From: Pavona decussata
Lineage: Eukaryota
NCBI GenBank assembly: GCA_977016875.1
Contig: CDRNST010000141.1
Coordinates: 806,001-870,000, forward strand
DNA: 64,000 bases
Direction: 5' to 3'
Both the position numbers and the translations under genes were made by a program. Below, one piece after another: positions 6,219 through 42,637 of this stretch. The notes under the pieces are model-generated. The model was not told the origin of the DNA, did not search any database, and saw only the letters and a program-made list of their open reading frames with translations. How positions within the stretch are numbered: the stretch's first letter is position 1; the number at the start of each line of letters is the position of its first letter.

Positions 6219-6420
6219 AGGCCGGTGCCTACTAATACAGAGGTAGTTGCGCAGTTGATCACTGTGGGTTTTAGCAAGGGCTATTGGAATCCAAAAACGA
6301 AAATTGGGGGTAACCACGCATTTTTCAGAGATAATTAAGCAGCAACAATTAAAAAAAAAAAAGAAGTAAAATGTAAAGCGATGTATGGCGTTTTTTTTTT
6401 CAAATTGAAGCTTTATTATC
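6217..6420. mobile_element. Truncated non-autonomous DNA element (MITE-like) ending the satellite
   Basis: Abrupt compositional break at taaggccggtgcctact; contains gggggtaaccacgcatttttcagagataattaagc, which I recall as a dispersed coral repeat (not searched). Confidence 0.5.
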
Positions 6421-17848: not shown

Positions 17849-17901
17849 GCTACACCGTGCTGACTAGAGCCAACCAGCTCGAAACAGCTGTCCACGGTTG
17901 C
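17849..17901 (+). ncRNA. Type I hammerhead ribozyme with one core mutation (CUGACUA for CUGANGA), within a retrozyme/PLE-type repeat (~17780-18010)
   Basis: CCGTG-CTGACTA-GAGC-caacca-GCTC-GAAAC-AGCT-GTC-CACGG; all three stems pair. Confidence 0.75.
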
Positions 17902-18255
17902 CGCATTCTGTTGATTCTCGGTTTGGTCTCTATCATGTCGCTGACGTGTTAAGTTTTCTACGCAGTCCGATTAGCCTTGCAGATATTTGAGTAATTATTC
18001 AGTATTGACTTATAAGTTATAAGTCAGTGTACGCTATAACTCAGTGGGAGGCCACAAAACAGCTTTGCAACCTCACGTATTTTATACGAAGTTCCCAGGC
18101 TCAAGATTCAATCCGTCCAGTCCGTCTCTTACTTGGAGCTAATATGTAGAAATCCAAGTTCTGTATGGTGAAGAAACATTACTTGGAGTTCCTATTTTCT
18201 GACAGTCCTAGTCATATTTCTAGTTCCAATTTTACCGTACGAAATCCAAGTATTT

Positions 18256-21200
18256 TTAAACTATTGTACAGATCAAACTACGACCACAGTCACAGCTTTT
18301 GAACTTAAAATCTTCCAATTGTAAACCCTTCTTATTTTCATGTTCCTGACGTAACCGAGCCAAGTTGTCTTGAACGGTGGCAACAAATGGATGCTCAGTA
18401 CCATGCTCTTTTATCAAAATAGTCAACGCGCGTTCAAAATACTCCTTCGACTGCTCCAGGTCTCCTTGGTCACGGAGTACAGTACCCAAGTTGTTAAACG
18501 AAGTAGCAACATGAACATGTTGAGGTCCCAGCTGCTCTAATTGAATGGCCAGGGCACGCTCATAATACTCCTTCGCCTGTTCAAGGTCACCTTGGTCACG
18601 GAGTACTTTGGCCAAGTTGTTATAAGAAGTGGCGACATTAACATGATGTGATCCTGACTGCTGTAGGCGAATAGCCAGGGCACGCTGATGATACTCCTTC
18701 GCCTGCTCCAGGTATCCTTGGTGACGGAGTACAGTAGCCAAGTTGCCATAAGAACTGGCCACGTCAACATGTTGAGGTCCCAACTTTTCAAGTCGAATGG
18801 CCAGAGCACGCTCATAATACTCCTTCGCCTGCTTCACGTCACCTTGTTCACGGAGTACAGTAGCCAAGTTGTCATACGAAGTGGCGACATTAACATGTTG
18901 AGTTCCCAGCTGCTGTAGTCGAATGACCAAGGCACGCTCATAATGTTCCTTTGCGTGCTTCAGGTCACCTTGGAGACGGAGTACAGTAGCCAAGTTACCA
19001 TAACAACTAGCGACGTCAACATGTTGAGATCCCAACCTTTGTAGCCGAATGGCCAGGGCGCACTCATGATACTCCTTCGCCTTCTCCAGGTCACCTTGTT
19101 CACGGAGTACAGTAGCCAAGTTGCCATAAGAAGTGGCGACATTAACGTGTCGGGGTCCCAGCTGCTGTAGTCGAATGGCCAGGGCACGCTCATGATACTC
19201 CTTCGCTTGCTCCAGGTCACCTTGGTCACTGAATACAGTAGCCAAGTTGTTGTAAGAAGTGGCGACGTTAACATGTCGAGGTCCCAACTGCTGTAGTCGA
19301 ATGGCCAGAGCATGTTCATGATACTCCTTCGCCTGCTCCAGGTGTCCTTGGTGACGGAGCACAATAGCCAAGTTGCCATAAGAACTGGCGACGTCAGCAT
19401 GTTGAGATCCCAACTTTTGTAGTCGAATGGCCAGAGCGCGCTCATGATACTCCTTCGCCTGCTCCAGGTCACCTTGGTGACGGAGTACAATAGCCAAGTT
19501 ACCATAAGAACTGGCGACGTCAACATGTTGAGGTCCCAATTTTTTTAGTCGAATGGCCAGGGCACGCTCATGATACGCCTTCGCCTGTTCCAGGTCACCT
19601 TGGTCACGGAGTGCAGTAGCGAAGTTATTAAAAGAAATGGCGACATTAACATTTCGAGTTCCTAGCTGCTGTAGTCGAATGGCAAGGGCACGCTCATGAC
19701 ACTCCTTCGCCTGCTCCAGGTCTCCTTTGTGCCGGAGTACAGTAGCTAAGTTGCCATAAGAACTGGCGACGTCAACATGTTGAGGTCCCAACTCTTGAAG
19801 TCGAATGGCCAGGGCACGCTCGTGATACTCCTTCGCCTGCTCGAGGTCTCCTTGGTGACGGAGTACATTAGCCAAGTTGCCATACGAACTGGCGACGTCA
19901 ACATGTTGAGGTCCCAACTCTTGAAGTCGAATGGCCAGGGAACGTTCAAGATACTCCTTCGCCTGCTCCAGGTCACCTTGGTCACTGAGAACAGAAGCCA
20001 AGTTGTTATAAGAACTGGCGACATCAACATGGTGAGGTCCCAGCTGCTGTAAACGGATGGCCAAGGCACGCTCACGATACTTCTTTGCCTGCTCCAGGTC
20101 ACACTGGTCACGGAGTACAGTAGCCAAGTTGCTACAAGAAGTGGCGACACTAACATGTTGAGGTCCCAGCATTTTTAGTTGAATATCCAGGGAGCGCTCA
20201 TGATACTGTTGGGCAAGGTGAAACTCACCCAGTTCATGATGAACATTGCCAAGTAAGTAGTTGGCTATTAAGGCATCTTCTTCTATAACGACGCCATCAT
20301 GCTGTATTAATTTTAACGCTACATTCAAGAACACTTTTGCAGTGTTAAACTCGCAATGACTAAAACATATCTTGCTAAACCTTATGAAATAATTTGGATA
20401 GTTTCTTATATCCAACGTAAAGTTTTCAACGACTTGGACTATGTCGTCTCTGTTGAAAGTAGCTTGAAATTTTGTACTTAAGAACTTTAAATGAGGAACC
20501 ACATGCCTGCTGTTAATAACACAATCCAAGTTATCTATGCACTGATAAAATGATGTAATGACCCCGAGATCGATTTTGAAATTTACACCCACCGAATAGT
20601 TTTTAGTTTCAGATTTGATCACATCATGCACACCCTGATGTACGCGAATGTAGACATCACCATCATCCTCTTCAAATAGCAGCAGTTGGCCTCTTTGAAT
20701 CTGCATTCGAATGGTATTGTCATCCTTTAAGTCGTCATCTACATTCAGTATGTAGTTTATCACAATTTCAAGGTTTAATGGTTGTTGTGAACAGAGCGAA
20801 AGAAAAGTGAATGTGTGATTCATAACTTTGTCTGAGGACATCGCATTTTTCACGGCTAATGTAGTGGCTGCGGTCATGGATTTTGGATAGCCTCGATTTG
20901 TCTCAGTAAGAAGAGTCTCAGTTCCAGCGCACTGACCTTTCTTTAGTTTTTCCAGGTAGTCTTTCCATCCATAATTTGAAGAGGCTTTGTTCTCACAAAC
21001 TTGTTTAACAAATGTGGCAGCACTTGCCAGGGCAAGAGGTTGATAGTCTAATGTCTGTGCGACCTCCTCTTCCACCTCAGTGTCAGTGATACCAGAAAGC
21101 CTGGATAATAAGGAAGTGGCATCAGCAAGCTCCATACCTTTGCTCACTGAGATGTGACTGATGAGAGAGTTTTTTAAGGGGATGGAGGTAGTGTCCTGTG

Positions 21201-22335
21201 TTGTGATCAGCATTTGCCCTCCTAACCACTGCTCGTTCCCAGATTCTGGCAAATGAACACTTACTTGAGGTATGCTGATAACATTGTCAACTATCAGTAG
21301 CCATGAGGTGAAGAGCTCAACTTTTTTGCTAACTAACGCCTTGAGATTGGCGATCTTTTCCCCTATCTCTGAATCCTTAGAACTAAGGGTGTCTGTAATT
21401 GCATATTCTGAACACTTCAACAGTCGAGCAAAAGAGACAAACGATTCTAGCAGTGAGTCAAGACTTTCAGCATTAAGAGTCATTACAAATGAGGTGTTTG
21501 CGGCTTCTTGGAAAAATCTGTTTGCGACGAGTCCGGCCAACTGAGATTTGCCACTGCCAGGATTCCCTGAGATGTACAGGTAACTTAAGCAGCTTTTGTT
21601 GCCTTCTTTAAGTTCCTTTAGCTGTTGGGTTATTTTAGTCACCTCATCATCTCGACCGGCAACGTCGTGTGAAGGCTTGGGAGGGAGAATGCAAAATGGA
21701 GAAACTTCAATCCGAACTGGCTGATCTTCAAGGACCTGTCTTTCATCTTCTTCTTCTTGAGGTTCTGCTACTTTCTCTTGGAGTTCCTGATAGAGGTCTT
21801 CAACGATTTTCAAGATCTTTGCTAACTCCTCCGTTTGAAAACTTCTCCGGTTTCTGATTTCTTCAATACTTAAGGTGGAGAGCCCGAGTTCTTGAAATGA
21901 AAACTCAACCTTAGTTATGGCACTGTGAAACGCTGGGTTTGAAAGATGGCCTCGTGGTATGTGAGGAAATTCTTCATTACGAAATTTCCTGAGATCATCT
22001 ACATTGGACTTGACGACTGCGTTAAGACTGTTGCCGATACAATCCGAGTACAAAATGGCATAAAAAAGCACGGTGCAATCCCACTCAGCTCGATTTCCAT
22101 TTATCATGGTAGCGAAAAGTTTTGCACCTCGTCTTTTACTACTTGGAGACTCCCCGTTATAGAAGTCCAGCCCATTCCTCGGCTCGTCCTTCCATCCCCC
22201 CAATGTAGCCTTGTAGCGGTTGTCCCATTCCTGTTTGAAGATTGTTCGTAGACTCTCGGCTAGTACATCCGTGGTGATACAGCAAATCCTGAAGTAGTTC
22301 AGTTGTTGATCGCTGAATTTTGTTGCAGCGGCCAT
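18256..22335 (-). CDS. NLR-like STAND protein: HEPN (DZIP3-like) - coiled coil - NB-ARC-type P-loop NTPase - 15 x 42-aa TPR - CaaX; 1359 aa, single coding exon
   Basis: Uninterrupted ORF; first ATG (MAAATKF) at 22335 just after a ttttatag acceptor (~22360); RNEEFPH (Rx5H); Walker A GNPGSGKS; Walker B WLLIVDNV; MLITTQ; YQPLAL (GLPL equivalent); RVHQ (MHD equivalent); kinesin-light-chain-type repeats; ends in CTIV*. Confidence 0.93.
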   Translation of the reverse strand: MAAATKFSDQQLNYFRICCITTDVLAESLRTIFKQEWDNRYKATLGGWKDEPRNGLDFYNGESPSSKRRGAKLFATMINGNRAEWDCTVLFYAILYSDCIGNSLNAVVKSNVDDLRKFRNEEFPHIPRGHLSNPAFHSAITKVEFSFQELGLSTLSIEEIRNRRSFQTEELAKILKIVEDLYQELQEKVAEPQEEEDERQVLEDQPVRIEVSPFCILPPKPSHDVAGRDDEVTKITQQLKELKEGNKSCLSYLYISGNPGSGKSQLAGLVANRFFQEAANTSFVMTLNAESLDSLLESFVSFARLLKCSEYAITDTLSSKDSEIGEKIANLKALVSKKVELFTSWLLIVDNVISIPQVSVHLPESGNEQWLGGQMLITTQDTTSIPLKNSLISHISVSKGMELADATSLLSRLSGITDTEVEEEVAQTLDYQPLALASAATFVKQVCENKASSNYGWKDYLEKLKKGQCAGTETLLTETNRGYPKSMTAATTLAVKNAMSSDKVMNHTFTFLSLCSQQPLNLEIVINYILNVDDDLKDDNTIRMQIQRGQLLLFEEDDGDVYIRVHQGVHDVIKSETKNYSVGVNFKIDLGVITSFYQCIDNLDCVINSRHVVPHLKFLSTKFQATFNRDDIVQVVENFTLDIRNYPNYFIRFSKICFSHCEFNTAKVFLNVALKLIQHDGVVIEEDALIANYLLGNVHHELGEFHLAQQYHERSLDIQLKMLGPQHVSVATSCSNLATVLRDQCDLEQAKKYRERALAIRLQQLGPHHVDVASSYNNLASVLSDQGDLEQAKEYLERSLAIRLQELGPQHVDVASSYGNLANVLRHQGDLEQAKEYHERALAIRLQELGPQHVDVASSYGNLATVLRHKGDLEQAKECHERALAIRLQQLGTRNVNVAISFNNFATALRDQGDLEQAKAYHERALAIRLKKLGPQHVDVASSYGNLAIVLRHQGDLEQAKEYHERALAIRLQKLGSQHADVASSYGNLAIVLRHQGHLEQAKEYHEHALAIRLQQLGPRHVNVATSYNNLATVFSDQGDLEQAKEYHERALAIRLQQLGPRHVNVATSYGNLATVLREQGDLEKAKEYHECALAIRLQRLGSQHVDVASCYGNLATVLRLQGDLKHAKEHYERALVIRLQQLGTQHVNVATSYDNLATVLREQGDVKQAKEYYERALAIRLEKLGPQHVDVASSYGNLATVLRHQGYLEQAKEYHQRALAIRLQQSGSHHVNVATSYNNLAKVLRDQGDLEQAKEYYERALAIQLEQLGPQHVHVATSFNNLGTVLRDQGDLEQSKEYFERALTILIKEHGTEHPFVATVQDNLARLRQEHENKKGLQLEDFKFKSCDCGRSLICTIV
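18345..20260 (-). repeat. 126-bp coding tandem repeat (15 TPR units)
   Basis: Recurrent SYxNLAxVLRxQGDLEQAKEYHERALAIRLQxLGPQHVxVA; DNA motif tactccttcgcctgctccaggtc recurs every 126 bp. Confidence 0.95.
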
Positions 22336-24747
22336 ATTCACCTTGTGTGACTGCAAGTTCTATAAAAATTAATAATCTGCTGTTAGCAAAACCGTGGTGG
22401 AATCTGGGTGGCCTGTTTCAGGTTCTAACGCCCCGTCCACACATGAATCTTCTCATTTGTAAAGGGAAATATTTTGTGTGTGGCCTGTGTAAATAAAAGT
22501 TTTTGTAAACGCTGACGTTACAGCATCTGATCCAGTTTGCAAACAGGAGAAAGTATCGGATATGGCAAATGATCTACGCGTGCTCAATTCAAGGGCTCAG
22601 AGTTTCTTGGGGACGGGTGAAATCTAATGTAAACTATCGCGGTATATGTGTCAATGGATTATAATTATGCAGTGGCGAAAGTAAACGCATACGCCTGAAC
22701 CGGGTTTAAGATGACGGAAACACACAATAGTGGCAGGCTTCCGTTTTCCCGGGAACACTCGACAGGTAAAACACTGAAAGTTCTGCTCGAGAGAGAGGAA
22801 GTTCTAGAAAGCCATGAGTAAGTTGCTCTGAGCAAGGGAAATAAGTAACTGTAGTAGAAAGCGTGAGATTTAAGATAACAAGAGTCTTTTTAATTCGATA
22901 TAGATCCCATCTACTGGGTAAGGCGACTGACGTGCTTCGGCCAGCGAATTACAAACATTGAATTCCCTTTTAACCATTTATTTTAAAACCCTGGAGTAAG
23001 GTTCACAAGCAATCACTTTGTGCTACTTTAACAAAGAAGGACGTAAGTGATAATATCTAGGGAGGCTTGCGAGCGAGTCTCGTGAACCTGTACAACGTTC
23101 GACGCCTGATCCAATAGTGCGCCTTCTGTTTACACAGAAGGTGAACCATGGGTGAAAACAAAAGGATCTTTACAACTTTTAAAACTACTTTAGTACTGTA
23201 TCTGGTTTATCTAACATTCAGATAATACTTCATTTCATTTGCCCACTAGAGCCGGTATTCCTTATGGCAATTGTTGGGGCAGATTGGTCCCCACTACAAT
23301 TGAAGATTCGTTTTAAACATTTGCTGTAAGGCTGTTTTTTCTTTGTGACAATAGGATTGTTTTAATGCTCTGCTTGTCGGCGCACGTGGAATTTGCGAAG
23401 GCGGGTGTAGGGAGTGAGTGGACAGCTCACTTCCTCCATGGCCAGAAGGCTGAATTTCAAGGGCGGTTTGATTTCACTCCACACAATCAAAACGATTCAC
23501 AAAAATAGGTCTTCATTTCACACAGTATTCAAATTACAGGGTAAGCCATTTTTCTTTCTCAAACCCGAGTGGACAAAAGGTAATTGAACTGTGGAGTTAT
23601 CTTACATGTGATAATTTCTGGTTGGTGACTTTGCATAAAAAGTTAGAAAGCGCTCTATTATGTGCACTAAAATTAAATATTCTTTTGTCTACTATAAAGT
23701 AGCCATACTAGCCTCGTTCAAGGTAAACTGATATTCTTTTGATTTTTGACTTCAAGAACGAGGTTTCGGTAGGTTGGGGTTTTCAGGTTCAATTTTTTAA
23801 TAGCCACATTAAATTGACCTACGACTCATCCGGAAATTTTTAAAGCTACAATAATATGGAGTCTAATTATAGTGTAGATTACTCCACAGAGAACAACTTA
23901 AACGACATATTTATTCCATAACACCTACTAAAGGTCAATAACAAGTAAATGAAAATTTGCTACTTTCAAGTGTCGGAACTGAGGTAAACAATCCAAACTA
24001 CCAGTTGACTTTGAGGGATTTAAAGTATTGACATGATCGACTAGAACCTATGCAAATGAAACGCTTTGTTGCTTGAAAAGAAATAAAAGGCGAAGTAAAA
24101 TTGCTGTTGTGGCTGTCAAATTAGGGTTTTTCTACTGTTTCCCAACTAAGGAATTCTATCGAATGGGCTGATTGGCTTAACAGGCGCTTCAAAATCAGTT
24201 GCAGCCAGGGAAAAGTCCAGGCTGTAGTCCACAATCAATTTTACAAAAACCCCTCGCACTCTGCGTCAGTAGACGTCTTCGTGTCGTTAAGTTCCGCACC
24301 ACTAATTTCTAACTGTTTTTTAGGTTGTTGTTTTCGAGAAACCCGAATATTCAGTGATGAATTGAAACATACTTAGAACATATGCATCGCATGTTAATTT
24401 AACACGTTGTTTTACCATCACAAATAAGAGGTAAAATACAAACAGCAACTGATGATGCCCTACACTTGAGCTTCATTTGAATGGTAATGAGCTACTCACA
24501 TTAGATAGGATTTCATTCACACACTTCGAAGTTTAACTGAACCATGGCCAAATTTCATGGCTCGGTCCAACTGTACTATCGCCAAGTACTCTACAGAAGC
24601 CGACATCAAATCAATGGAAATAGTCCTTTTTTGGCCCCATGCATCAAAATGGATATAACAAGTGCAATTTTGTAACTTTGCAGAATTTTGCAAGTTTGCA
24701 TGGCATTCACGAAAGAGAATCCAAAGTCAGTAATAAAGAATACTCAC

Positions 24748-25627: not shown

Positions 25628-25930
25628 NNNNNNNNNNNNNNNNNNNNNNNNNNNNNNNNNNNNNNNNNNNNNNNNNNNNNNNNNNNNNNNNNNNNNNNNN
25701 NNNNNNNNNNNNNNNNNNNNNNNNNNNNNNNNNNNNNNNNNNNNNNNNNNNNNNNNNNNNNNNNNNNNNNNNNNNNNNNNNNNNNNNNNNNNNNNNNNNN
25801 NNNNNNNNNNNNNNNNNNNNNNNNNNNNNNNNNNNNNNNNNNNNNNNNNNNNNNNNNNNNNNNNNNNNNNNNNNNNNNNNNNNNNNNNNNNNNNNNNNNN
25901 NNNNNNNNNNNNNNNNNNNNNNNNNNNNNN
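25628..25930. other. Assembly gap (N run)
   Basis: Run of N. Confidence 1.
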
Positions 25931-26149: not shown

Positions 26150-27250
26150 CAAATTTGAACTACTGGAACCGGTTGCAGCGGACGTGGTTTTCATTTCGTT
26201 GGTCACACTCATTCGCCACAAGTCGAATCTTATCGGTTCTTGCATTATGGACTGGATGTGCAATATTGCCACATGCTAAAACCATAGCTGATTCATGTTG
26301 CTCAGAACCATGATGATGATGATTATTACTATTATTTCGACTTGCAAATAAAGATAACCAGTTCTTAAATCATCATCGTAACTGTTACGTTCTTCCAGGT
26401 ATTTGATTTGTGAGGATATGTCTTTGGTGTTCAGTCTTTGGTCTCTAGTGCTCAAAATAGATTCTTCGATATACTTCAGTCTTCAAGTTCTACTGGGAAG
26501 GTGTTTCAGTTCTAACCTAAGACTCTCACAGGAGCTCTTTTTCTTTTATTTCTTGGTACTTTAGGCGCTGTGATGGAAGTATAAAGTGGTATTTTGCGAA
26601 GCACTGTTTGATAGAAAGTTGCAAAACATCCGGCATCTTTTCTAATTTTGATGAGCACATCCGTCGTGACAAGCTGGTTTTCTGTAAGGTCTCCGATAGA
26701 TTGTCGGTATGGGAAAAAATTTTCTGCAAAGAACAGGACAAACTTTCTCATTTGTGCTTGGCACCGAAAACTCCTGCCGGGAATATCTGATCCTGGTCTT
26801 GTTTCAAGGCAATCATTCCATGGCATTAACAATCTTTCAATCCTCAGTTGTCGATGGCCTTTTGAAAACAAATGTTTGCACAGTCCATCTTAGTTCATCT
26901 TGTTGTACTGAACTTAGTCAAGCCAGATGCAACCATGTCTTCCTCTTTTACTTCTATATTGGACTTTTAAAATTTGTCCGAGTATGGTTTCGCGCTTTGG
27001 CGAGAACTTAGCAATTTCTGCTTGGTGTCGTTCATTGCCTCTGATAATATTTTGCAGTTATTTGTTGCATCTTTTACGCTGATAATTAGCGAATGAGCAT
27101 GGCAATGTGTAGGGGGAGCATTTTTCTGAAAGTATCTTGAATTTGCTTCGCAACACTCGATTTTTTACCCAACATGCAGCTCGGGCCATTACATGGAAGG
27201 TTGCAATCTGATAAAAGCATCTTTTATGACCAACACCACCGTGCCATATG
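26150..27250 (-). mobile_element. Decayed hAT-type (ZMYM1-like) transposase
   Basis: Frameshifted minus-strand motifs MLGKKSSVAKQIQD, PTHCHAHSLIISVKDA, KFSPKRETILGQI, FATFYQTV..PKVPRNKRKRAP, YRRIYFE, and a dimerisation-domain-like MNQ..HVAILHI..RTDK..VANE. Confidence 0.8.
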
Positions 27251-27627
27251 CAGTATTAGAAACCAAATAAAAGCACCAAAAATCTTCATGCACCTTCGGT
27301 AACTTATTAACTGCGCCTTCGGTAATGTATGAACTGCGTCTTTCGCCCCCAATCATCTACACTAGCGTTTTCACAGGTAGGGGGGTGAATTAGAGGCTCC
27401 AACCCACTCCCCCACGTGAGAAGATTGGGTCTCGAAGTCGGAAACAAAGATTTTCAGTTTCGCTTGGTTCAGCGTCTTTCAAATTTTTGTTTTACTTACA
27501 AAAGACTTTGAAATCCTAAATAAAAAAAAAATGACGATACTACGAAAGAACAAAATTTCTTCCATTATCCAACAAATAATCTGATCCCCACATTTTAATG
27601 ACACATCTAAGCCACTTAACAATTCTC

Positions 27628-27849
27628 TCAATGTTTCTTGGCGGGATCTATGTTACTTTTGGAGGCTTCGCAGTTTTCGTCGACTACTTTTTCGGTGGCG
27701 GTGGGGTCTCTGCGGTCCCTGTGCAGTCGGCCAACGCCGCGGCGTCGCTTTCTGTGCATCCTTCGCGCTCGCCCTTGGCTGTTAACGGTGGCAGTTAACA
27801 TCAGATTAACCAGTAACAGAACAAGTAAGAGATATACCACTTTTGCCAT
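27628..27849 (-). CDS. Secreted Arg-rich peptide precursor, copy 1 (73 aa)
   Basis: MAKVVYLLLVLLLVNLMLTATVNS | QGRARRMHRKRRRGVGRLH | RDRR | DPTATEKVVDENCEASKSNIDPAKKH; acceptor tcttctctctgcag 5 nt before the ATG; ATTAAA ~30 nt after the stop; ORF conserved in three paralogs. Confidence 0.85.
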   Translation of the reverse strand: MAKVVYLLLVLLLVNLMLTATVNSQGRARRMHRKRRRGVGRLHRDRRDPTATEKVVDENCEASKSNIDPAKKH

Positions 27850-28377
27850 GTTCACTGCAGAGAGAAGATCATTATGAGATATTAAAATGTAGAATGATCA
27901 CTTGAACCTGAAATAATCTTTGTAAGTTTATAACACGCGCTAATTTATAACAACTAATAATTGTAAATAAGTTTTCTTCTTTTAATGAAGGGGGAGGAAC
28001 CTCCGACTCCCGCTCCACTCTCCCCAGGTTGCGCTCACCGTTACAAACTAAGATGGCGGGGATTGGTAAGTTAAAGCACCCAAACGAATCATTTTGTATA
28101 GGCTTACTCAAATATGTCTTTAAATGGACAGAAAAAGATACCTTCTGCAGGTACAATGAAAATTTGCATTGGGACGTACGCTTATATAACAAATATTTGC
28201 GCAATAGCGGAACTACGTAAAACTAAAGTGATTGATAGTATAAAATATGAAGCAAATGAAATAATAATAATAACAACAAAAAATAAAATAATAATAATAA
28301 AAGGAAAAAATCTAGTAAATTTCTTCGCGAACATTGAGGCCATGTGGAAGAAGTGTCCTGCCTTTTGTGATTAAAAA

Positions 28378-28925
28378 GGCTTCCCTTACGGATTGAGTCT
28401 CGGTTAGAGTAGACTTTTTCTATGGGGATTAATTGCATGTCGTTAGCGGTGTGGTTAGGAGCGGTGAGGAAGTGTTCTGCGGCTGTGGTGGGTTTAGATT
28501 TAGTGTTAAGGTTATCTATGGTGCGGCGGTGTTCATTAACTGAAGCGGTCTTTTAAGCGTGGTTTAGTCTCTCCTATGTATTGTAAATTATAGCAGTTAC
28601 ATTGGATCATGTAGATTAGATTTTAGTTTCACAGGTCAGGTTAGATGATAGGGCGTGTTTCACCGGTGGAAAAAAAGGTGTAGTTAGTGAGACCATCGGA
28701 AATGTATGGGCAGGTGGCGCAATTTTAACCGCAACGATAGGAGCCGGGAAGGAGTTGTGGGTGGGGATTAGTCGAAATACAAGAAAGTTTAGCCGAAACC
28801 AGTAAGCCAGGTAGGTTAGGAGATCGTCTGAAGGCCACAACAGGTAAATTTGGAAAAACCTTTTTGCAGCGGTCAAACGAGAGCAGTAAATGGCAATGTT
28901 TTTTAATGATGTTGGAGATGTGACC
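28378..28925 (-). mobile_element. Penelope-like retroelement fragment (GIY-YIG region) in the intron of peptide copy 1
   Basis: PVVAFRRSPNL..LLVSAKL, CG*NCATCPYI, TCETK/NLIYMIQCNCYNLQYIGETKPRLKDRF/NEHRRTI, AAEHFL..NHTANDMQLIPIEKV; stops and frameshifts present. Confidence 0.88.
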
Positions 28926-29338
28926 ATTTTCTGTTCTCGTCTGACCGCTGCAAAAAGGTTTTTCCATGATGAACATATGTTCCGGGAATTTATAGCTCAC
29001 TCACGTGATTTGTTCTCTCGCGCGGTGATTGTTCGTTACGCGGCGTCGTGATTGTAGCACGCGGGTCTCTGACGGAGGACGTGGAATCACCTCTGAACTG
29101 ACTTGAATGATGTGAAATCAGTAACAATTTAGCCGCTGTCCGTGAAAGGTCAAAATCTCAGGCTTTAGTTGTCTGTAGTCCGAAATTCTTAGATTTTGCA
29201 AAACATCTCGGTTTACACAATAGGCCTCGGTGTCAAGATACGCCGTCGTGATGCTCACGAGTTTCACGAGTTTGCATCAAATGAAAGCCACAAAAAAGTG
29301 CCGGAATACAAAGTTTCTAAAATAAAACAAATACTCAC

Positions 29339-29484
29339 CCCTGCCTAAGTTTCCAACTTGCTTTGGAGTGAGTCAAAGCAGCAAGCAGTAGTTTCTCAGT
29401 ATTGCCGCGTAGAAGTGAACCTCGCCTCAACTTGACCAACTCAGCGAAATTGAATTCGAGATCCAAGACAAGGCCTCTTTTATA
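29339..29484 (-). promoter_or_regulatory. TATA box and non-coding exon 1 of peptide copy 1
   Basis: TATAAAAG at 29484-29477; ATG-free ~115-nt exon ending GG|GTGAGT at 29339. Confidence 0.65.
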
Positions 29485-30962
29485 TTCCGTTATTGCATGT
29501 TCAAATCATGTATTTTTTATCTTGACATGACAACGCTTCTCTGATCTGCGGGTGTATTGACAGGAATCCATGTGATCCCGGTCCCCGACCTGAAATGATC
29601 CCCAGAGTGAACCACAAATGATGCCGTGAAAAATAATAGAAATGCTCCGTTTACCGGGGAAATGAAAACAATCCATACCCTGTCAATATAAATAACACTG
29701 CGTATTGAGTTCAAAAAGTACATGCTGTGAGATCTCTGCTGTTAAGTCGGCGTTGATTTCCATTCAAACGAGTCAAAACACACGTTCGTGTCCTGCATTT
29801 TAGTACCAGAATGAGATGAACTGAAGAAGGAAATGACTAAAATGAACTGTAAAAAGTACATTTGACGCGATATTTAATTAAACGAAATGGTAAATAAGGG
29901 CAAACGAATGAGGATATCTGCTCTCTTCTGTTCCAGGCGAAAGAGATTTGGCAGGAAGGTAAAAGGAAAACTACATGCTATGATAATTTATGATTCTGTT
30001 TACCGTTCAAATTAAATGGGCGATAATTAATGGGGTAAACCAAGAACAAAACACACACTCCACTAAAGTTGGTAGACTAATTTTAACTAAGAAAAGAGAA
30101 AGAAAAGATTAATTGTCCGCTGTTCATATGAAAACCTGGTCATCACCGCCATAATTTCGCTTCTTGGTGATCACTTGTAACGGATTGTGTTTCAGTTCTG
30201 GTCTTAACCGCAGCAATCTCTAACACAAAAAGTCACGATGTAGCATGTAAAATGCAAGTCGAAAAAGTTAAGGCAAAGTTATCACGCCTGGGTAAAGACA
30301 GACTTAACTCAATTGGCAATTAGCTAATTAAGAACTAGAGCGGGAAAACGCGCACGAGATATTGAGAAACACAATTTGGCTTTTAATTCCTTCTAGTAGA
30401 AAAAAAAAATCGCAGTTGTTAGTCAAAAGCAAAGCAAACATTGTACTTAAAAACTACTCAGGGCCGGCTGTGTAGACATTCTCTGCGTCTGCACTCTTTC
30501 CCAAAATTGTTCATAAGAAATTGGCGCGTTAACTGAAATGTTCCTGTCATGAAAAATTTGTACCCTCCCCACAGGTACCCCAAGCTCTATGAAAAGCAAT
30601 GGAACTAAAATGCACTAAAATCGCGCTCAATCGCTCCATAAACCACACAGGAGAAAGCAAAACAGACAAGGGAGTTCAGGTAGGGATATTTTTATTGAAA
30701 ATTGTTGGTATTTTTAAATTGAAGCAGGAATGGTTTTTTTTTTCCATACAAATCCTTATAATTTCGCCGTTACGCAATGTTGTCCGTGACGCTCAAATTA
30801 TATTACAACACTCACGCAAAGGTCACGGCCTATATCTCTCATAGCACTTAGGGTACCTGTGCCCTCCCCCGGCAAATTAAATTCATATCCTGAAAAGATT
30901 TTGGAAAACTGGCTGAAATATCGCCTTCCTAAGACGCCAATTCAGTTCATATCATAGAAAGT

Positions 30963-31045
30963 TCATTGCCGTGTTGTGTGAGAGTTTCCTTTCCTTAGAT
31001 AGCGGCAATCCTCCAGTTCATCGCACCAGGCCCCAAAAGTCGTCT
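30963..31045 (-). pseudogene. 3' remnant of a coiled-coil/CRYLR gene
   Basis: Encodes TTFGAWCDELEDCRYLRKGNSHTTRQ*, near-identical to the ends of the ORFs at 34314 and 41864; the upstream part is missing. Confidence 0.9.
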
Positions 31046-31491
31046 ACCTTGCGAGCAGAGGCCCTTCGATCTTCCTAGATAAGTCGGGAAGTCATGCGCC
31101 TTCGGTAACTTATAAACTGCGCCTTCAGTAATGTATGAACAGCGCTTTTTGCCCCCAACCATCTACACTAGTGTTTTCACGGGTAGGGGGGTGGGTTAGA
31201 GGCTCCAACCCACTCCCCCACGTGTGAAGATTCAGTGGGTCTCGAAGTCGCAAATGACGGTTTTGTTTTGAATTTCGCGTCTGGTTCAGCATCGGGTCTT
31301 TCAAACTTTTGATTTACTTACAAAAGAGTTTGAAATCCTAAAACAAAAGAAATGAGCATACTACGAAGGAGCAAAATCATCTGCCATTGTCCAAAATTCA
31401 TACCCAGCTGATTCAAACCCAAAGTTTGATTTGCAACAAATATTCTGATCTCCACATTTTAATGACACATCGAAGCCATTAAACAACTCTC

Positions 31492-31701
31492 TCAAAGTTT
31501 CTTGGCGGGATCTATGTTACTTCTGGAGACTTCGCAGTTTTCGTCGACTACTTTTTCGGTGGCGGTGGGGTCTCTGTGGTCCCTGCGCAGTCGGCTACGG
31601 CGCCGGCGTCGGGCATTGAACATGCCTAGCCCTTGGCTGGTGGAAGTTAACATCAGATTAACCAGTAGCAGAGCAAGTAAGAGATATACCACTTTTGCCA
31701 T
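31492..31701 (-). CDS. Secreted Arg-rich peptide precursor, copy 2 (69 aa)
   Basis: MAKVVYLLLALLLVNLMLTSTS | QGLGMFNARRRRRSRLR | RDHR | DPTATEKVVDENCEVSRSNIDPAKKL; same acceptor and ATTAAA as copy 1. Confidence 0.85.
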   Translation of the reverse strand: MAKVVYLLLALLLVNLMLTSTSQGLGMFNARRRRRSRLRRDHRDPTATEKVVDENCEVSRSNIDPAKKL

Positions 31702-31818
31702 GTTCACTGCAGAGAGAAGATCATTATGAGATATTGAAATGCAGAATGATCACTTGAACCTGAACTAACCTTTATAAGTTTATAACACGCGGTAATTAAT
31801 AACAACTAATTGACGCAT

Positions 31819-31849
<31 letters not shown>
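31819..31849. repeat. (ATG)n microsatellite
   Basis: About 10 perfect units. Confidence 0.95.
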
Positions 31850-33046
31850 CCTTTCTTTAACCGCGGCAGTGTTTATAGTATATAGTACATAGGGCAGAAC
31901 ATTAAACATTGTTAAAACGTTACATTGTTACATACGAAAACAATAACATTGTAATGTTGTCAAAAATCCCAACTAGAAGGAGGCAGAGCAGTTGGTTACA
32001 AACGTCAAAGATAAAAAAGGTGCCTGTCTTTGTTGTATGAGCATCCCTCTGATAAGAATGCCACAAAAAAGCAAATTTGTCGTCGAAAATGCGAAAAAGG
32101 GCCAGTCCCCTACTTTTCCATGGCATTTTCAAATTTTCGTGCACGCTTTGATCGAGCCCGCCATCTTAGTTTGTAACGGCGAGCGCTTCCTGGAGAGAGT
32201 GTCTGAACTACCAGCGGATATTGGCTGGAGTACATTTTATCCGCTGTATAGCAGTTTATCCACTGGAAACAGCTATCCGCTCTTTAAACAAGTGGGGCCA
32301 GATGTTTCGTTCCCAGCCAATTTTTCGAGAAAGGGCTAAGCTCGAAACGTCTGGAATGTTTTTAGGTTTTTTTTGGCACTTCTCCACCATTTACTCAACT
32401 TTCAGGATAGCTTTACTCGCGGGGGGTGAGCAAGCTGGCGTTTCTGGTGATGACTCAGTTTATCTGTTTGTCAATGTTTTCAGCGTTTTCTTAAAAATTT
32501 TCAATGTCAAGCTGAGAATAATGGTTATGTTAATATCAGGAGATAAAAAAGGATAGGTCAGACTACTTGCTTAGGAGAAAATAACCATTTAGTGGTTAGA
32601 TGGGCTTTGCATCAAGGCTTGAAGTTTACCGTGTTTCTAACGTGCGCGCACTGATGAAGCAAGAACTTGTGGGCTGTGAGAACGCCTAATGCAGTTTAAT
32701 GGAACCACCATCTTTGAAGAACCAGGAGCAGATAGTTGGGTCAGAAGGATGTCAAATCGGGTTAACTTACTGACCCAACTATCCGACCCTGGGTCTCCGA
32801 GGACGTGGAATCACCTCTGAACTGACTTGAATGATGTGAAATCAGTGACAATTTAGTTGTCCGTGAAAGGTCAAAATCTCAGGCTTCAATTGTCTGTAGT
32901 CCGAAATTCTTAGATTTTGCAAAACACCTCGGTTTACAAGATAAGCCTCGGTGTCAAGATACGCCTTCGTGATGCTCTCACGATTTTGCATCAAATGAAA
33001 GCCACAAAAGTGAATCCAAAGTTTCTACAGTAAAAAAAATACTCAC

Positions 33047-33486
33047 CCCTTCCTTAGTTTCCAACTTGCTTTGGAGTAAATCAAAGCAGCAGTTTCCAGT
33101 ATTGCGTAGAAGTGAACCTTGCCTCAACTTGATCAACAGCGAAATTTAATTCGAGAACAAGACAAGGCTGCTTTTATATTCAGCTATTGCGTGTTCAAAT
33201 CGTGCATTTTTTATCTTGACCTGTCAACGCTTCTCTGATCTGCGAGTGCATTTGCACGAATCCATGTGGACCGCGCCGCAAATGATCTCGGGGCCGCTAA
33301 TGATCCCGGTCCCCAACCTGAAATGATCCCCAGAGTGGACCATAAATGATGCCGTGAAAAATAGTAGGAATGCTCCGTTTACCGAGGCAATGAAAACATT
33401 CCATACCCTGTCAATATAGAAAACAATACGTCTTGGGTTCAAAAAGTACATGCTGTGAGATTGACGAAAAGTCGGCGGGGATTTCC
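33047..33486 (-). promoter_or_regulatory. Exon 1, TATA box and kappaB-like site of peptide copy 2
   Basis: Donor GG|GTGAGT at 33047; TATAAAAG at 33178-33171; GGGGATTTCC at 33477-33486. Confidence 0.6.
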
Positions 33487-34313
33487 ATTCAAGTCATTGA
33501 AGCAAAATCAAAATAACTGTAAAAAGTACATTTTACGCGATATTTAATTAAACGAAATGGTAAATAAAAGCAAACAAATGAGGGTATCTGCTCTCTTTTG
33601 TTCCAGACGAAAGAGATTTGGCAGGAAGGCAAACTACATGCTATGATAATTTACGATTCTCTTTGCCTTTCAGATGGACGATGATTAGTTTGTGCAACCA
33701 AGAACAAACAAACACTCCACTTAGGTTGGTAGAATGGGTTTAACTAAGAAAAGAGAAAGAAAAGATTGTCCGCTGTTCATGTGAATCCTGGTCATCACCA
33801 TAATTGCACTTCTCGGTGATCACTTGTAACGGATTGTGTTTCAGTTCTGGTCTTAACCGGAGCAATCTATGACACAAAAAGTCACGATGCAGCATGTAAA
33901 ATGAAAGTCTAAAAAAGGTAAAAGCAAAGTTATCACGCCTGGGTTAAGACAGGAACAACTAGACATAACTAATTAAGAACTAGAGCGGGAATTCGCAAAC
34001 GAGATATTTAGAAACACAATTTTGCTTTTAATTCCTTTTAGTAGAAAAAAATAGCCAATCAAAGCTTAGTTAAACAAAAGCAAAGCAAACATTGTACTTG
34101 AAAACTACTCGGGACCGGCTGTGTGGACATTCGCTGCGTCTGCACTCTTTCCCAGAGTTTTTGATAAGAAATTGGCGCGTTGACTAAATAGACCCTTTCA
34201 TGAGAAATTTGCAGCCTCCCGTAGCAATTCAATTCATATCCTGAAAAGATTTTGGCAAACTGACTGAAATGTCGCCTTCCTAAGACTCCAATTCAGTTCA
34301 TATCATAAAAAGT

Positions 34314-35096
34314 TTATTGTCGTGTTGAGTGGGACTTTCCTTTCCTTAGATAGCGGCAATCCTCCAGTTCATCGCACCAAGCCCCAAACGTCGTCTTGCT
34401 TGTCCCAGCACCTTCACAGCCTGAAACTCTCACGTCTTTCAATCTCTGGTACTCCTGTGTTTCTTTTCTCTGTAATGGCGTTCTCATACAGCATTGGTGT
34501 ATTGGTGGTAACACAAGTGGTGGTAGTATGTCTGATAAGGCTCTTGGTCGTTTTAATTTCGCCTCTCCGATGCCCGAGTTGGTCATATGTTCGGTATCAT
34601 AAGCAATACTCACTCCATTATTTCTCTCTCTATCGATTTGCGCATGGTTAACGATAGAAGGATTTCTTTCCTTCGAAATCCAATTTACATATGCAGCCTC
34701 TCTCCATTTGCTTTCCCAGTAGCGCTGACCACCACACCATACCAAACTCGAAGACTCTTGTTGTGAATAACTTCTGCATCGATTCAGAGATTTTCCAGGC
34801 GCACCTTTGAAATCCGATTCTCTGCGCCACTGGTCATTGCATGTGCTTTGATTATTGACATTGCTTCTCTCAATTTTCTGCGATTCAGTTTTTTGCTGCA
34901 GAAGTTTCTGTTTTTGATGTTGAAAGTGCATCTCTTTCACCGTCCTTTCTTTGTTGATTTGTCGGGTAAGCTTGTCCAACGCCATTTTTCCAAAGGTGTT
35001 TCTCGTCAAAAGATGTCGCACCAAACCGCTTGATATCGGCTTCGATTCGTTGGAGCGTTCTTCTGAACGCATGCCTCCGATTTTCTTGTTTTCCAT
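34314..35096 (-). CDS. Intronless coiled-coil / LPPI / C-terminal CRYLR protein (260 aa), family member A1
   Basis: Intact ORF; N-terminal LLTRN..L.K...I.KE....E..F..QKQKLLQ motif shared with five other ORFs in the window; ILPPLVLPPI; DELEDCRYLR. Confidence 0.8.
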   Translation of the reverse strand: MENKKIGGMRSEERSNESKPISSGLVRHLLTRNTFGKMALDKLTRQINKERTVKEMHFQHQKQKLLQQKTESQKIERSNVNNQSTCNDQWRRESDFKGAPGKSLNRCRSYSQQESSSLVWCGGQRYWESKWREAAYVNWISKERNPSIVNHAQIDRERNNGVSIAYDTEHMTNSGIGEAKLKRPRALSDILPPLVLPPIHQCCMRTPLQRKETQEYQRLKDVRVSGCEGAGTSKTTFGAWCDELEDCRYLRKGKSHSTRQ

Positions 35097-36002
35097 CCAA
35101 GGAATTCACGGAGACTTTCTGGAATTACTCTTGGAACGCACCGAGATACATATATCTTTTCAGTTATCTTTTGTCTCACCAAATTAAGTTGTATTCTCTG
35201 TTGATATACACCTTGATACAGGCACAACCGGGTAAACAGTGGGGTTTCGCAACTGTCGTCGGTGACGCACTGAAACACATGCCCAAGAGGTAAAATTTAA
35301 CCAGGAGAGGGATCCATGCACGGAAGCTACAATTCATACCAATGGGAAAAGTCATCTGTCCCTGCATTTGCTTTTGTATCAACTGAAGGAAGGTTACCTA
35401 TTTTCAGTATTTTGAAAGTGAACGTGTAATAACGTGACACATTCAGTATAACAGAACTTTCTCCGTTCCCGATCGCTTTTCTAAACTGACATAAGGCTCA
35501 GATATCCACAAAAAACTCAGTATTATTAATTACCCTCTATACTTTAATTTATCGCCTTTTTAGCTTTATACTTGAGTAAGATTTTATCGACAACGCAAAA
35601 CTTGGACTTCGTTTATACTGACTCGCTCCAGCACGAGCTAACTGTTATTCTCAATTCAACATCTCAAATTCCGCATAAATTGGTATAAGCGTTCTATCTC
35701 CCCCTCCCCCCTCCCCCTTCCCTCCACTCACTGATACCCTATGGTGTGTCGCAAAAGCTCAAAATACAGAAAAAAGCCTGAGACTAGCTAGGAGCTACCC
35801 TGAGCTTGCTTGCAGCCTCTCTTACGAGGTTTCCAGTTTCGGTCGAAGGCTCTCCAGCCGATCCAAGTCCACGCGGCGCGCGAGGTAAAACCTCTTGTAC
35901 CCTGGTTAGCTAGAAGCTGGAGTGACTCTTGTTTGAACAAACTTTAAAAATACTGTCAGAAGTGAATGGGGCTTCTTTAGAGACAACAAGCGGTTGTTGC
36001 CA

Positions 36003-36550
36003 GAAAAAATTATCTGTAAAGAACAGGACAAACTTTCTCATTTTTGCTTGGCACCGAAAACTCCTACCAGGAATATCTGATCCTGGTCTTGTTTCAAGGC
36101 AATCATTCCATGGCATTAACAATCTTTCAATCCTCAGTTGTCGATGGCCTTTTGAAAACAAATGTTTGCACAGTCCATCTTAGTTCATCTTGTTGTACTG
36201 AACTTAGTCAAGCCAGATGCAGCCATGTCTTCCTCTTCTACTTCTATATTGGACTTAATTTGTCTGTGGTATGGTTTCGTGTTTTGGCGAGAACTTGGTC
36301 AGTTTAGCAATTTCTGATTGGCGTCGTTCACTCTCTCTTATAATATTTTGCAGTTATTTGTTGTATCTTTTACGCTTATAATTAGCGAATGAGCATGGCA
36401 ATGTGTAGGGGGAGCATTTTTCTGAAAGTATCTTGAATTTGCTTCGCAACACCCGATTTTTTACCCAACATGCAGCTCGCGCCATCACATGGAAAATTGT
36501 AATCTGATAGAAGCATCTTGTATGACCAACACTACCGTGCCAGATGCAGT
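36003..36550 (-). mobile_element. Duplicated part of the hAT transposase remnant (left edge of cassette unit 3)
   Basis: Near-identical to 26715-27250. Confidence 0.8.
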
Positions 36551-36821
36551 ATTAGAAACCAAATAAAAGCAGCAAAAATCTTTATGCGCCATTGGTAATG
36601 TATGAACTGCGTCTTTCGCCCCCAGCTATCTACACTAGTGTTTTCACTGGTAGGGGGTGGGTCAGAGGCTCCAACCCACTCCCCCACGTGTGAAGATTGG
36701 ATCTCGAAGTCGCAAACAAAGATTTTCAGTTTCGCTTGGTTCAGCGTCGGGTCTTTCAAACTTTTGTCTTACTTTCAAAATAGTTTGAAATCCTAAAACA
36801 AAAGAAATGAGCATACTATGA

Positions 36822-37306
36822 CAGCATTATCGTTCGCGGTCCTTTGCAGTTTTCACGTCTACTTTATTTTTTGGGACCGTAGGTCTTTACAGATCCGATA
36901 TGCTGTGCCTTTTAAGCATGGTTTTGTCCATGCTGTGCCTTTTAAGCATGGTTTTGTCCATGCGTTTCAATGTAAAGATGGTTTTGTCCATCTACATTCA
37001 GTTGATTTTGCGAGACAGGAATTCGATGCTTTGTCTGCTTTCTCCCTGAGGCACGTGATGTGGCAGCGCGTGGTTCGGGAGCGGGCAGGTTCAAAGTACG
37101 AAACCTGATAGGACATGGGTTTTGTTGCATTTTATTTGAGCTGGCTCTGTCGCTGGTTTCATATAGAACTGCTACACCGTGCTGACGAGTTCCAATAAGA
37201 ACGAAACAGCTGTCCACGGTTGCAGCCCTGGTTTGTCGGTTTCTGTCGGATTGTTGTCTCGCAAAGTCAACTCTTTCACGTAGTATCAGCCTTGCAGTTT
37301 GTGTTA
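36822..37306 (+). mobile_element. ~485-bp retrozyme/Penelope-type non-autonomous insertion with 10-bp target-site duplication
   Basis: catactatga at 36812-36821 and 37307-37316; absent from the paralogous sites at ~27540 and ~31360; internal 30-bp tandem repeat (~36900-36990) and a hammerhead motif. Confidence 0.85.
37171..37226 (+). ncRNA. Intact type I hammerhead ribozyme
   Basis: Stem I ACCGTG/CACGGT; CTGACGA 37182-37188; stem II GTTC-caataa-GAAC; GAAAC 37203-37207; palindromic stem III ACAGCTGT; GTC cleavage triplet 37212-37214. Confidence 0.9.
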
Positions 37307-37405
37307 CATACTATGAGGGAACGAAATGTCTGCTATTGTCTAAAATTCAAACCCAACGACAAATATTCTGATCACCACATTTTAATGACACATCTAACAA
37401 CTCTC

Positions 37406-37621
37406 TCAACGTTTCTTGGCGGGATCTATGTTACTTTTGGAGGCTTCCCAGTATTCATCGACTACATTTTCAGTGGCGGTGGGGTCTCTGCGGTCCCTGT
37501 GCAGTCGGCTTTCGCTGTGGTGTCGTCCACTGCGTTTCCTTCGCCCTTGGCTGTTAACGGTGGCGGTTAACATCAGATTAACCAGTAACAGAACAAGTAA
37601 GAGATATACCACTTTTGCCAT
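37406..37621 (-). CDS. Secreted Arg-rich peptide precursor, copy 3 (71 aa)
   Basis: MAKVVYLLLVLLLVNLMLTATVNS | QGRRKRSGRHHSESRLH | RDRR | DPTATENVVDEYWEASKSNIDPAKKR. Confidence 0.85.
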   Translation of the reverse strand: MAKVVYLLLVLLLVNLMLTATVNSQGRRKRSGRHHSESRLHRDRRDPTATENVVDEYWEASKSNIDPAKKR

Positions 37622-37749
37622 CTTCACTGCAGAGAGAAGATCATTAAAATGTAGAATGATCGCTGAAACCTGAAACTAATCTTTGTAAGTTTATAACACG
37701 CGCTAATTTATAACAACTAATAATTGTAAATAAGTTTTCTTTTCTTAAT

Positions 37750-41863: not shown

Positions 41864-42637
41864 TCATTGTCGTGTTGCGTGAGACTTTCCTTTCCTTAGA
41901 TAGCGGCAATCCTCCAGTTCATCGCACCAAGCCCCAAAAGTCGTCTTGCTTGTCCCAGCACCTTCACAGCTTGAAACTCTCACGTCTTTCAATCTCTGGT
42001 ACTCCTGTGTTTCTTTTCTCTGTAATGGCGTTCTCATACAGCATTGGTGTATTGGTGGTAACACAAGTGGTGGTAGTATGTCTGATAAGGCTCTTGGTCG
42101 TTTTAATTTCGCCTCTCCGATGCCCGAGTTGGTCATATGTTCGGTATCATAAGCAATACTCACTCCATTATTTCTCTCTCTATCAATCTGCGCATGGTTA
42201 ATGATAGGAGGATTTCTTTCCTTTGAAATCCAATTTACATATGCAGCCTCTCTCCATTTGCTTTCCCAGTAGCGCTGACCACCACACCATACCAAACTCG
42301 AAGACTCTTGTTGTGAATAACTTCTGCATCGATTCAGAGATTTTCCAGGCGCACCTTTGAAATCCGATACTCTGTGCCACTGGTCATTGCGTGTGCTTTG
42401 ATTATTTCTCTCAATTTTCTGCGATTCAGTTTTTCGCTGCAGAAGTTTCTGTTTTTGATGTTGAAAGTGCAGCTCTTTCACCGTCCTTTCTTTGTTGAGT
42501 TGTCGGGTAAGCTTGTCCAACGTCATTTTTCCAAAGGTGTTTCTCGTCAAAAGATGTCGCACCAAACCGCTTGATATCGGCTTCGATTCGTTGGAGCGTT
42601 CTTCTGAATGAATACCTCCGATTTTCTTGTTTTCCAT
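41864..42637 (-). CDS. Intronless coiled-coil / LPPI / CRYLR protein (257 aa), family member A2
   Basis: Intact ORF, near-identical to 34314-35096 apart from a 3-aa in-frame indel and scattered substitutions. Confidence 0.8.
   Translation of the reverse strand: MENKKIGGIHSEERSNESKPISSGLVRHLLTRNTFGKMTLDKLTRQLNKERTVKELHFQHQKQKLLQRKTESQKIERNNQSTRNDQWHRVSDFKGAPGKSLNRCRSYSQQESSSLVWCGGQRYWESKWREAAYVNWISKERNPPIINHAQIDRERNNGVSIAYDTEHMTNSGIGEAKLKRPRALSDILPPLVLPPIHQCCMRTPLQRKETQEYQRLKDVRVSSCEGAGTSKTTFGAWCDELEDCRYLRKGKSHATRQ

Follow-up and report, generated by a model that had tools for sequence, protein, structure and literature searches.

A tandem family of candidate secreted, arginine-rich peptide precursors with a rapidly diverging core in the stony coral Pavona decussata

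We analyzed a 64,000-nucleotide (nt) stretch of the genome of the coral Pavona decussata (GenBank assembly GCA_977016875.1, contig CDRNST010000141.1, positions 806,001 to 870,000 of the forward strand; hereafter the window, to which all positions refer) and found in it three small open reading frames (ORFs) that lie in tandem on the minus strand and code for 73, 69, and 71 amino acids from the ATG (copies A, B, and C). The three precursors share one layout, namely a hydrophobic N-terminus, an arginine-rich core with a net charge of +7 to +11, and a 26-residue tail behind an R-D-[R/H]-R site. Judged by their sequences, they appear to be a new family of a known kind of peptide precursor. The reading that we favor, tentatively and as one possibility among several, is that they are secreted prepropeptides cut by proprotein convertases, with the cationic core as the effector on which selection acts. 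A first-pass annotation of this DNA had proposed a family of three paralogous ORFs of 69-73 residues at these positions, and both the ORF list and tblastn bear this out. The genes and their parts, as placed by the ORF list, tblastn, and a codon alignment, are as follows:

27628-27849, minus strand: peptide gene A, uninterrupted coding sequence (CDS) of 73 amino acids plus stop; ATG at 27849, stop codon at 27628-27630
27778-27849, minus strand: signal-like segment of gene A
27709-27777, minus strand: core of copy A, 23 residues with 11 Arg and 1 Lys, net charge +11, R-x-[KR]-R motifs inside
27631-27708, minus strand: tail of gene A
31492-31701, minus strand: peptide gene B, CDS of 69 amino acids plus stop; ATG at 31701, stop codon at 31492-31494
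31636-31701, minus strand: signal-like segment of gene B
31573-31635, minus strand: core of copy B, 21 residues with 9 Arg, net charge +8
31495-31572, minus strand: tail of gene B
37406-37621, minus strand: peptide gene C, CDS of 71 amino acids plus stop; ATG at 37621, stop codon at 37406-37408
37550-37621, minus strand: signal-like segment of gene C
37487-37549, minus strand: core of copy C, 21 residues with 8 Arg, 1 Lys, and 3 His, net charge +7
37409-37486, minus strand: tail of gene C

Pairwise tblastn comparisons of the copies gave E values of 1e-25 to 1e-31, and no fourth copy was found when each ORF was searched against the whole window. The alignment of the three peptides has 75 columns, 49 of them invariant, and the codon alignment contains two indels of 6 nt each, both in frame. 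These indels had been noted in the first-pass annotation, as had an R-D-x-R site before the tail, which reads R-D-R-R in A and C and R-D-H-R in B. The residue counts that it gave for the core segments it quoted (8 Arg and 1 Lys; 7 Arg; 5 Arg, 1 Lys, and 3 His) are also correct.

To place the family among known proteins, we searched several public collections. A word-indexed search of 5.8 billion proteins returned two unnamed homologues, P0001 and P0002, whose ENA contigs measure 529 and 1064 nt. Copy A and P0001 share 90% identity, with no differences in the signal segment, four in the core, and three in the tail. P0002 is of the B type: its signal segment is the same as that of B, the 14 variable core positions are identical, two differences lie near the cleavage site, and the tail differs at 6 of its 26 positions. 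Across these comparisons the family reads as a mosaic in which core types are stable lineages and the tail, which had been described as conserved, is not uniformly so. The identity of the B-type core in P0002 argues against the core being a drifting spacer. An exhaustive hidden Markov model search with a profile of the five sequences against 1.84 billion representative proteins retrieved only the family's own cluster, and a profile search of the PDB gave nothing relevant (chance matches to ribosomal protein L21, E ~0.16). Four sub-threshold matches in a Pfam scan that admitted E values up to 1 (HemY_N, FXR_C1, YxzE, and Sarcoglycan_1) were unrelated and judged spurious. A scan of JGI metagenomes with the family alignment yielded 349 pattern matches, 0 of which were confirmed, and a full-text literature search for five family motifs found no paper. 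The lack of a recognizable family, remarked on from the outset, thus held in the Pfam, PDB, and 1.84-billion-protein profile searches, and as far as sequence comparison can tell this is an undescribed, orphan small-gene family restricted to stony corals. The three peptides of the window are absent from a 15-billion-protein collection in which a neighboring 257-residue protein occurs exactly, and existing gene calls have evidently skipped the three ORFs.

The pattern of divergence among the copies is modular, and the core is its outlier. Counting substitutions between pairs of the three copies, nucleotide divergence is 1-6% in the signal segment and 4-10% in the tail, as against 5-13% (up to 19% for B-C) in the adjacent non-coding DNA of the duplicated segments. 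The likeness of signal and tail among the copies, whose divergence there is about or slightly below the non-coding level, simply reflects young duplicates. The core, at 21-32%, has diverged beyond the surrounding non-coding DNA, with odds ratios relative to the non-coding flanks of 3.3, 3.3, and 2.1 (Fisher p = 1.4e-4, 1.1e-3, and 0.014). An earlier description of a hypervariable core between conserved flanks is therefore right about the core, while the flanks are no more conserved than non-coding DNA. By the Nei-Gojobori method, core differences comprise 12-16 nonsynonymous and 2-3 synonymous changes, for a ratio of nonsynonymous to synonymous rates (dN/dS) of 2.1-3.6. The core dS of 0.13-0.22 is similar to the non-coding divergence, and dN/dS in signal and tail is roughly 1 or less where it can be estimated. 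Despite this turnover of sequence, the net charge of the core is kept at +7 to +11. That nonsynonymous changes are in excess in the core, more so than in the flanks, is compatible with the diversifying selection that had been suggested, on a basis of three copies and few sites.

Base composition could also shape such a pattern, and one alternative is that the ORFs are non-functional, or very young and unexpressed, and that the divergence of the core is a mutational artefact of CpG decay, slippage, and patchy gene conversion in CpG-rich repeats of Arg codons. The core has 62-68% GC and 6-10 CpGs, compared with 45% GC in the remaining CDS. Transitions in a CpG context make up 2 of 18, 4 of 13 (the A-C pair), and 6 of 18 of the core differences per pair, or up to a third, and where C has His and Ser, A has CpG-containing codons. 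CpG decay thus plays a part, particularly for the His and Ser of C, but falls short of explaining the excess, since the majority of core differences are of other kinds; slippage among the repeated Arg codons or patchy gene conversion may contribute as well. Because the duplicates are young, their intact ORFs are modest evidence, gene calls on near-identical large contigs in the protein collection omit them, and an antisense ORF is likewise open opposite all three genes (plus strand, 27638-27877, 31502-31729, and 37416-37673). The antisense ORF is probably a by-product of the codon composition of the sense strand, and we regard coding on the plus strand as unlikely, since the start context, the signal-like segment, and the TATAAA and ATTAAA motifs described below all fit the minus strand, as does the frame of both database proteins. 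Against an artefact, the three window copies and the two independent database proteins all keep the frame: none has a stop in spite of many CGA codons, and the only indels are of 6 nt and in frame, whereas the flanks have many indels. The charge is also maintained, P0002 has an identical B-type core in spite of having diverged elsewhere, and the putative expression signals lie on the sense strand. Taken with these points, an artefact seems to us an improbable explanation.

The N-terminal segment has diverged less than any other part of the gene. It combines a basic n-region with a 15-residue h-region of Leu and Val and small residues at -3 and -1, followed by an invariant S-Q. In the reading that we favor, the first 22-24 residues would be a cleavable signal peptide, and cleavage would expose an N-terminal Gln. 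AlphaFold2, run with the five-sequence alignment, predicted one helix over residues 2-31, with confidence for residues 1-20 only (pLDDT, the per-residue confidence score, ~90). Beyond the N-terminal part the pLDDT is ~52, there is no helix past residue 31, and the core and tail are predicted to be disordered. The same segment might instead be an uncleaved anchor, in which case a very small protein would result that crosses the membrane once, with a polybasic stretch next to the membrane and a short tail in the cytosol. Its hydrophobic stretch may be taken as 15-19 residues long, the AlphaFold2 helix extends over residues 2-31, and the 15 residues after the hydrophobic segment carry a charge of +3 to +5, compared with +2 on its N-terminal side. 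By the positive-inside, or charge-difference, rule, a more positive side after the segment could favor a membrane anchor with the C-terminal part in the cytosol. Polybasic juxtamembrane segments may tolerate sequence change as long as their charge is kept, but such neutral tolerance cannot account for divergence above the neutral level. The small residues at -3 and -1 before an invariant Gln fit a signal-peptidase site, and the layout matches that of documented secreted precursors (PMC5577615; PMC6780910), so that an anchor strikes us as a doubtful reading.

The core has a pI of 12, with 8-11 Arg among its 21-23 residues, and is very hydrophilic (mean Eisenberg hydrophobicity of about -1.0 to -1.2, hydrophobic moment 0.09-0.44). 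In its composition it resembles an unstructured Arg-rich peptide, unlike amphipathic helical antimicrobial peptides (AMPs) such as cecropins and piscidins. The peptides had been called free of cysteine, which is true of the core; the precursors of A and B carry a single Cys in the tail, at a position occupied by Trp in C, P0001, and P0002. R-x-[K/R]-R motifs occur two or three times in each precursor, of which one or two fall within the core, and an R-x-[K/R]-R or R-x-x-R before the tail is kept in all five sequences (A, B, C, P0001, and P0002). Furin-type proprotein convertases would cut at R-D-[R/H]-R, and possibly also inside the core, parting a disordered poly-arginine core from the 26-residue tail. 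The tail ends in K-K-X, and its basic ends may then be trimmed. Its net charge is -2 to -4, distributed as -4 or -5 over the first 16 residues and 0 to +3 over the last 10, so that it cannot neutralize a core of +7 to +11 and is not a charge-balancing anionic C-terminal propiece.

These same features could be read the other way round, with the tail as the bioactive product, a signaling or other secreted peptide, and the Arg-rich core as a spacer or propeptide rich in convertase sites that is cut up and discarded. The conserved motif among the two or three R-x-[K/R]-R motifs stands exactly at the N-terminus of the tail, the K-K-X end would suit trimming by carboxypeptidase, and the copies in the window resemble one another much more closely in the tail than in the core. 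A spacer would, however, be expected to change at the neutral rate, not two to three times faster with nearly all changes nonsynonymous, and the conservation of the tail does not exceed that of the neighboring non-coding DNA. The comparison of B with P0002 also runs contrary to this alternative, since 6 of 26 tail residues differ where the variable cores are identical, and the tail is predicted to be disordered. Cnidarian neuropeptide precursors typically carry repeated units that end in a Gly-basic amidation signal. On inspection, the coral peptides differ from such amidated precursors in having neither repeated units nor a conserved Gly-basic signal, in the tail or elsewhere. We think it rather unlikely that the tail is the product.

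The DNA around the genes contains putative expression signals that fit the minus strand. Homology among the copies begins ~110-135 nt upstream of the ATG and continues beyond the stop. In the upstream block common to the three copies, TATAAA occurs twice (between -74 and -100), together with a 6-codon upstream ORF (uORF) and a pyrimidine tract with CAG that ends 6 nt before the ATG. The start codon has A at -3 and G at +4, which is a good context. The following features were placed by DNA alignment, the sequence itself, and a motif scan, and their roles as promoter, intron, or poly(A) signal are putative:

27850-27958, minus strand: upstream shared block of copy A
27944-27949 and 27927-27932, minus strand: TATAAA of copy A at -100 and -83
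27852-27872, minus strand: uORF of copy A
27855-27868, minus strand: acceptor-like tract with CAG of copy A
31702-31810, minus strand: upstream shared block of copy B, with TATAAA at -83 and -75, an acceptor-like motif at 31707-31720, and the upstream ATG (uATG) at 31722-31724
37622-37721, minus strand: upstream shared block of copy C, with TATAAA at -91 and -74, an acceptor-like motif at 37627-37640, and the uATG at 37642-37644
27594-27599, minus strand: ATTAAA, a hexamer like a poly(A) signal, 29 nt past the stop of copy A
31458-31463, minus strand: ATTAAA 29 nt past the stop of copy B
37381-37386, minus strand: ATTAAA 20 nt past the stop of copy C

From this arrangement we infer that each gene is a compact unit with one uninterrupted coding exon, which would consist of a TATA-like promoter block, a short 5' untranslated region (UTR) that possibly includes an intron with its end 6 nt upstream of the ATG, the coding exon, and the ATTAAA signal. 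Transcription may start downstream of the TATA-like motifs, or else in a non-coding exon further upstream that is spliced to the acceptor-like site, and splicing at that site would remove the uATG. As the TATAAA motifs, the good start context, and the ATTAAA are conserved in the sense orientation, we count them in favor of genuine peptide genes. A perfect (ATG)10 microsatellite lies at 31819-31849, exactly where the upstream homology of B to A and C stops.

With these results in hand, the preferred reading can be given in full: three young tandem paralogues of a family restricted to stony corals would encode small secreted prepropeptides, and the likely effector would be the core, a linear, non-amphipathic, Arg-rich cationic peptide directed against microbes or other foreign cells. 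Because the core keeps its composition, with a charge of +7 to +11, but changes faster than neutral DNA, we believe that it is under selection, and to judge from sequence this pattern is one that secreted effectors typically show when they evolve fast. The sequences themselves establish the genes, their modular divergence, the nonsynonymous excess, the orphan status, and the coral host; that the peptides are transcribed, secreted, processed, and active is what we infer from these features. Several observations weigh against this reading. The charge after the hydrophobic segment is more positive than before it, as described above, which is the distribution of an anchor, and the tail is only weakly anionic. 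The one or two polybasic, furin-type motifs inside the core could fragment it, so that an intact core peptide is not assured. The tests of selection use three DNA copies and 13-21 substitutions, and a GC- and CpG-rich core of repeated Arg codons could have a locally raised rate of mutation or slippage.

Comparison with known peptide systems supports the kind of precursor rather than any kinship. The closest analogues, by layout and not by homology, are the myticalins and modiocalins of mussels, linear cationic AMPs whose antimicrobial activity is backed by assays of synthetic peptides (PMC5577615). Myticalins have the same order of parts: a conserved signal peptide, to which the putative one of the coral precursors would correspond, then a center that is hypervariable, unstructured, and Arg-rich with a pI above 11, a basic convertase site, and a shared C-terminal extension (PMC5577615). 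The variable and predicted unstructured coral core likewise has a pI above 11 and more than 10% Arg, and a basic convertase site separates it from the extension in all five sequences of the family. Both families are multigene and taxonomically restricted, and myticalin genes have an intron just before the ATG (PMC5577615), where the coral genes have the acceptor-like motif ending 6 nt upstream. The differences are also clear. The myticalin extension is 35-75 residues long, strongly anionic, and rich in Asp and Glu, in contrast to the coral tail of 26 residues and -2 to -4; myticalins are rich in Pro, Arg, and Tyr, whereas the coral core is nearly all Arg and has furin-type motifs inside it; and in their genes a phase-1 intron interrupts the extension, in contrast to the uninterrupted coral CDS. 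Myticalins are restricted to Mytiloida, in another phylum, and no homology to them was detected in the profile search of 1.84 billion representatives. Their activity has been demonstrated, while that of the coral peptides is putative.

The first-pass annotation had instead compared the family with piscidins, cecropins, and styelins, and here only the order of domains fits. Ascaris cecropins, tunicate styelins, and fish piscidins and pleurocidins share the succession of signal, cationic peptide, and C-terminal pro-region (PMC6780910), but their mature peptides are amphipathic alpha-helices, whereas the coral core is very hydrophilic, of low hydrophobic moment, and predicted to be disordered. 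Ascaris cecropins are also highly conserved, unlike the hypervariable coral core, and the coral peptides had no Pfam match to the cecropin or pleurocidin-piscidin family profiles. Among cnidarian peptides, damicornin and AmAMP1 are likewise from Scleractinia and are secreted, cationic, and processed at basic sites, as the present peptides would be, but they are folded, six-cysteine, ShK-related peptides (PMC11767717), whereas the precursors described here have no or one Cys, none of it in the core, and no predicted fold. The arminins of Hydra are also taxonomically restricted and linear and combine a cationic with an oppositely charged part in one precursor (PMC11767717). Their active cationic part is C-terminal (PMC11767717), in contrast to the coral cationic part directly after the signal-like segment, and no similarity was detected in the profile search of 1.84 billion representatives.

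A secreted product need not be antimicrobial. It could be a component of venom or nematocysts, or a cell-penetrating or nucleic-acid-binding poly-Arg peptide that targets the symbionts or the cells of the coral itself. The composition of the core is nearer to that of protamine-like or cell-penetrating Arg-rich peptides than to that of classical amphipathic AMPs. Cnidarian toxins typically share cysteine frameworks, but the coral peptides lack one, such as the six Cys of known coral and anemone AMPs, and the data indicate no target. A conserved signal combined with a hypervariable mature region is also typical of toxin families (PMC5577615). Of the alternatives considered here, such an effector is the one to which we give the smallest chance.

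The genes lie within a tandem segmental duplication in a window of ~40% GC. Peptide-gene modules of ~0.7 kb alternate there with a 1.5-kb module and with an unnamed family of ORFs of 257-260 residues. Repeat families and self-blastn delimited the duplicated segments, and the main features of the surroundings are as follows:

26713-37749, no strand assigned: tandem segmental duplication carrying the three genes
27286-27986, 31092-31810, and 36585-36821 plus 37359-37749, no strand assigned: the ~0.7-kb peptide-gene modules
34314-35096 and 41864-42637, minus strand: the two copies of the 257-260-residue ORF nearest the peptide genes, with a remnant at 30862-31051
48162-48641, 52057-52644, and 57205-58038, minus strand: other paralogues of this ORF family
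18256-22356, minus strand: single NLR-like ORF of 1366 residues, with an AAA_16 NTPase region and a long TPR array

The neighboring ORF family has five tandem minus-strand paralogues of 159-277 residues and 22 unnamed homologues in public data; a Pfam scan of it found no domain, and its three longest copies share a C-terminal Cys-Arg-Tyr-Leu-Arg motif. We considered whether the peptide ORFs could be the terminal exon of the 257-260-residue ORF gene and rejected this, as that ORF has its own stop after the C-terminal motif common to the paralogues and the homology between modules breaks ~110-135 nt upstream of each peptide ATG. The NLR-like protein has more than 1000 relatives, of which the named ones are all from stony corals (Montipora, Porites, Stylophora, Orbicella, Oculina, and Desmophyllum), and its closest matches are unnamed ENA proteins at 99%, 81%, and 78%. 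The named relatives identify the host group as Scleractinia.

Copy C is split from the 3' flank common to A and B by an insertion of ~540 nt (36821-37359). This insertion holds a full-length match to a type I hammerhead ribozyme (37176-37220, plus strand; Rfam RF00163, 39.4 bits against a gathering threshold of 34, E 1.7e-6), and a second copy of the motif, 57 nt long and 86% identical, lies just 3' of the NLR-like ORF (17848-17904, plus strand). Animal type I hammerheads have been reported within non-LTR retrozymes, LTR denoting long terminal repeats (PMC7229834). Also inside the insertion, next to copy C, is a 30-nt tandem repeat of 3.1 copies with a hairpin-forming unit (36900-36991, plus strand), on which an Rfam match to the alphacoronavirus 5' UTR, at 30 bits against a gathering threshold of 70.3, was taken for chance. 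Elsewhere in the window, a tRNA scan found no tRNA genes, positions 1-8000 are AT-rich (32-33% GC), and a run of 303 N occupies 25628-25930.

The stony-coral peptides named in a review of the field are damicornin and AmAMP1 only, both with six cysteines (PMC11767717). In its boldest form, the proposal would be that stony corals have a family of rapidly diversifying, secreted, protamine-like poly-arginine peptides, the first linear, Cys-free effectors of host defense or partner control in Scleractinia, which would penetrate the cells or bind the nucleic acid or membranes of bacteria or of the coral's own symbionts, with paralogue-specific cores kept by selection; we put this forward as a long shot. 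Small genes of this sort are absent from current coral gene sets, as the three peptides of the window illustrate. If the preferred reading is true, the effectors known from coral innate immunity and from the control of microbiome and symbionts would come to include a secreted family that is linear, rich in Arg, and quick to evolve, and it would add a further convergent case of the design of conserved signal, hypervariable cationic core, and C-terminal extension that is found in mussels, frogs, and cone snails.

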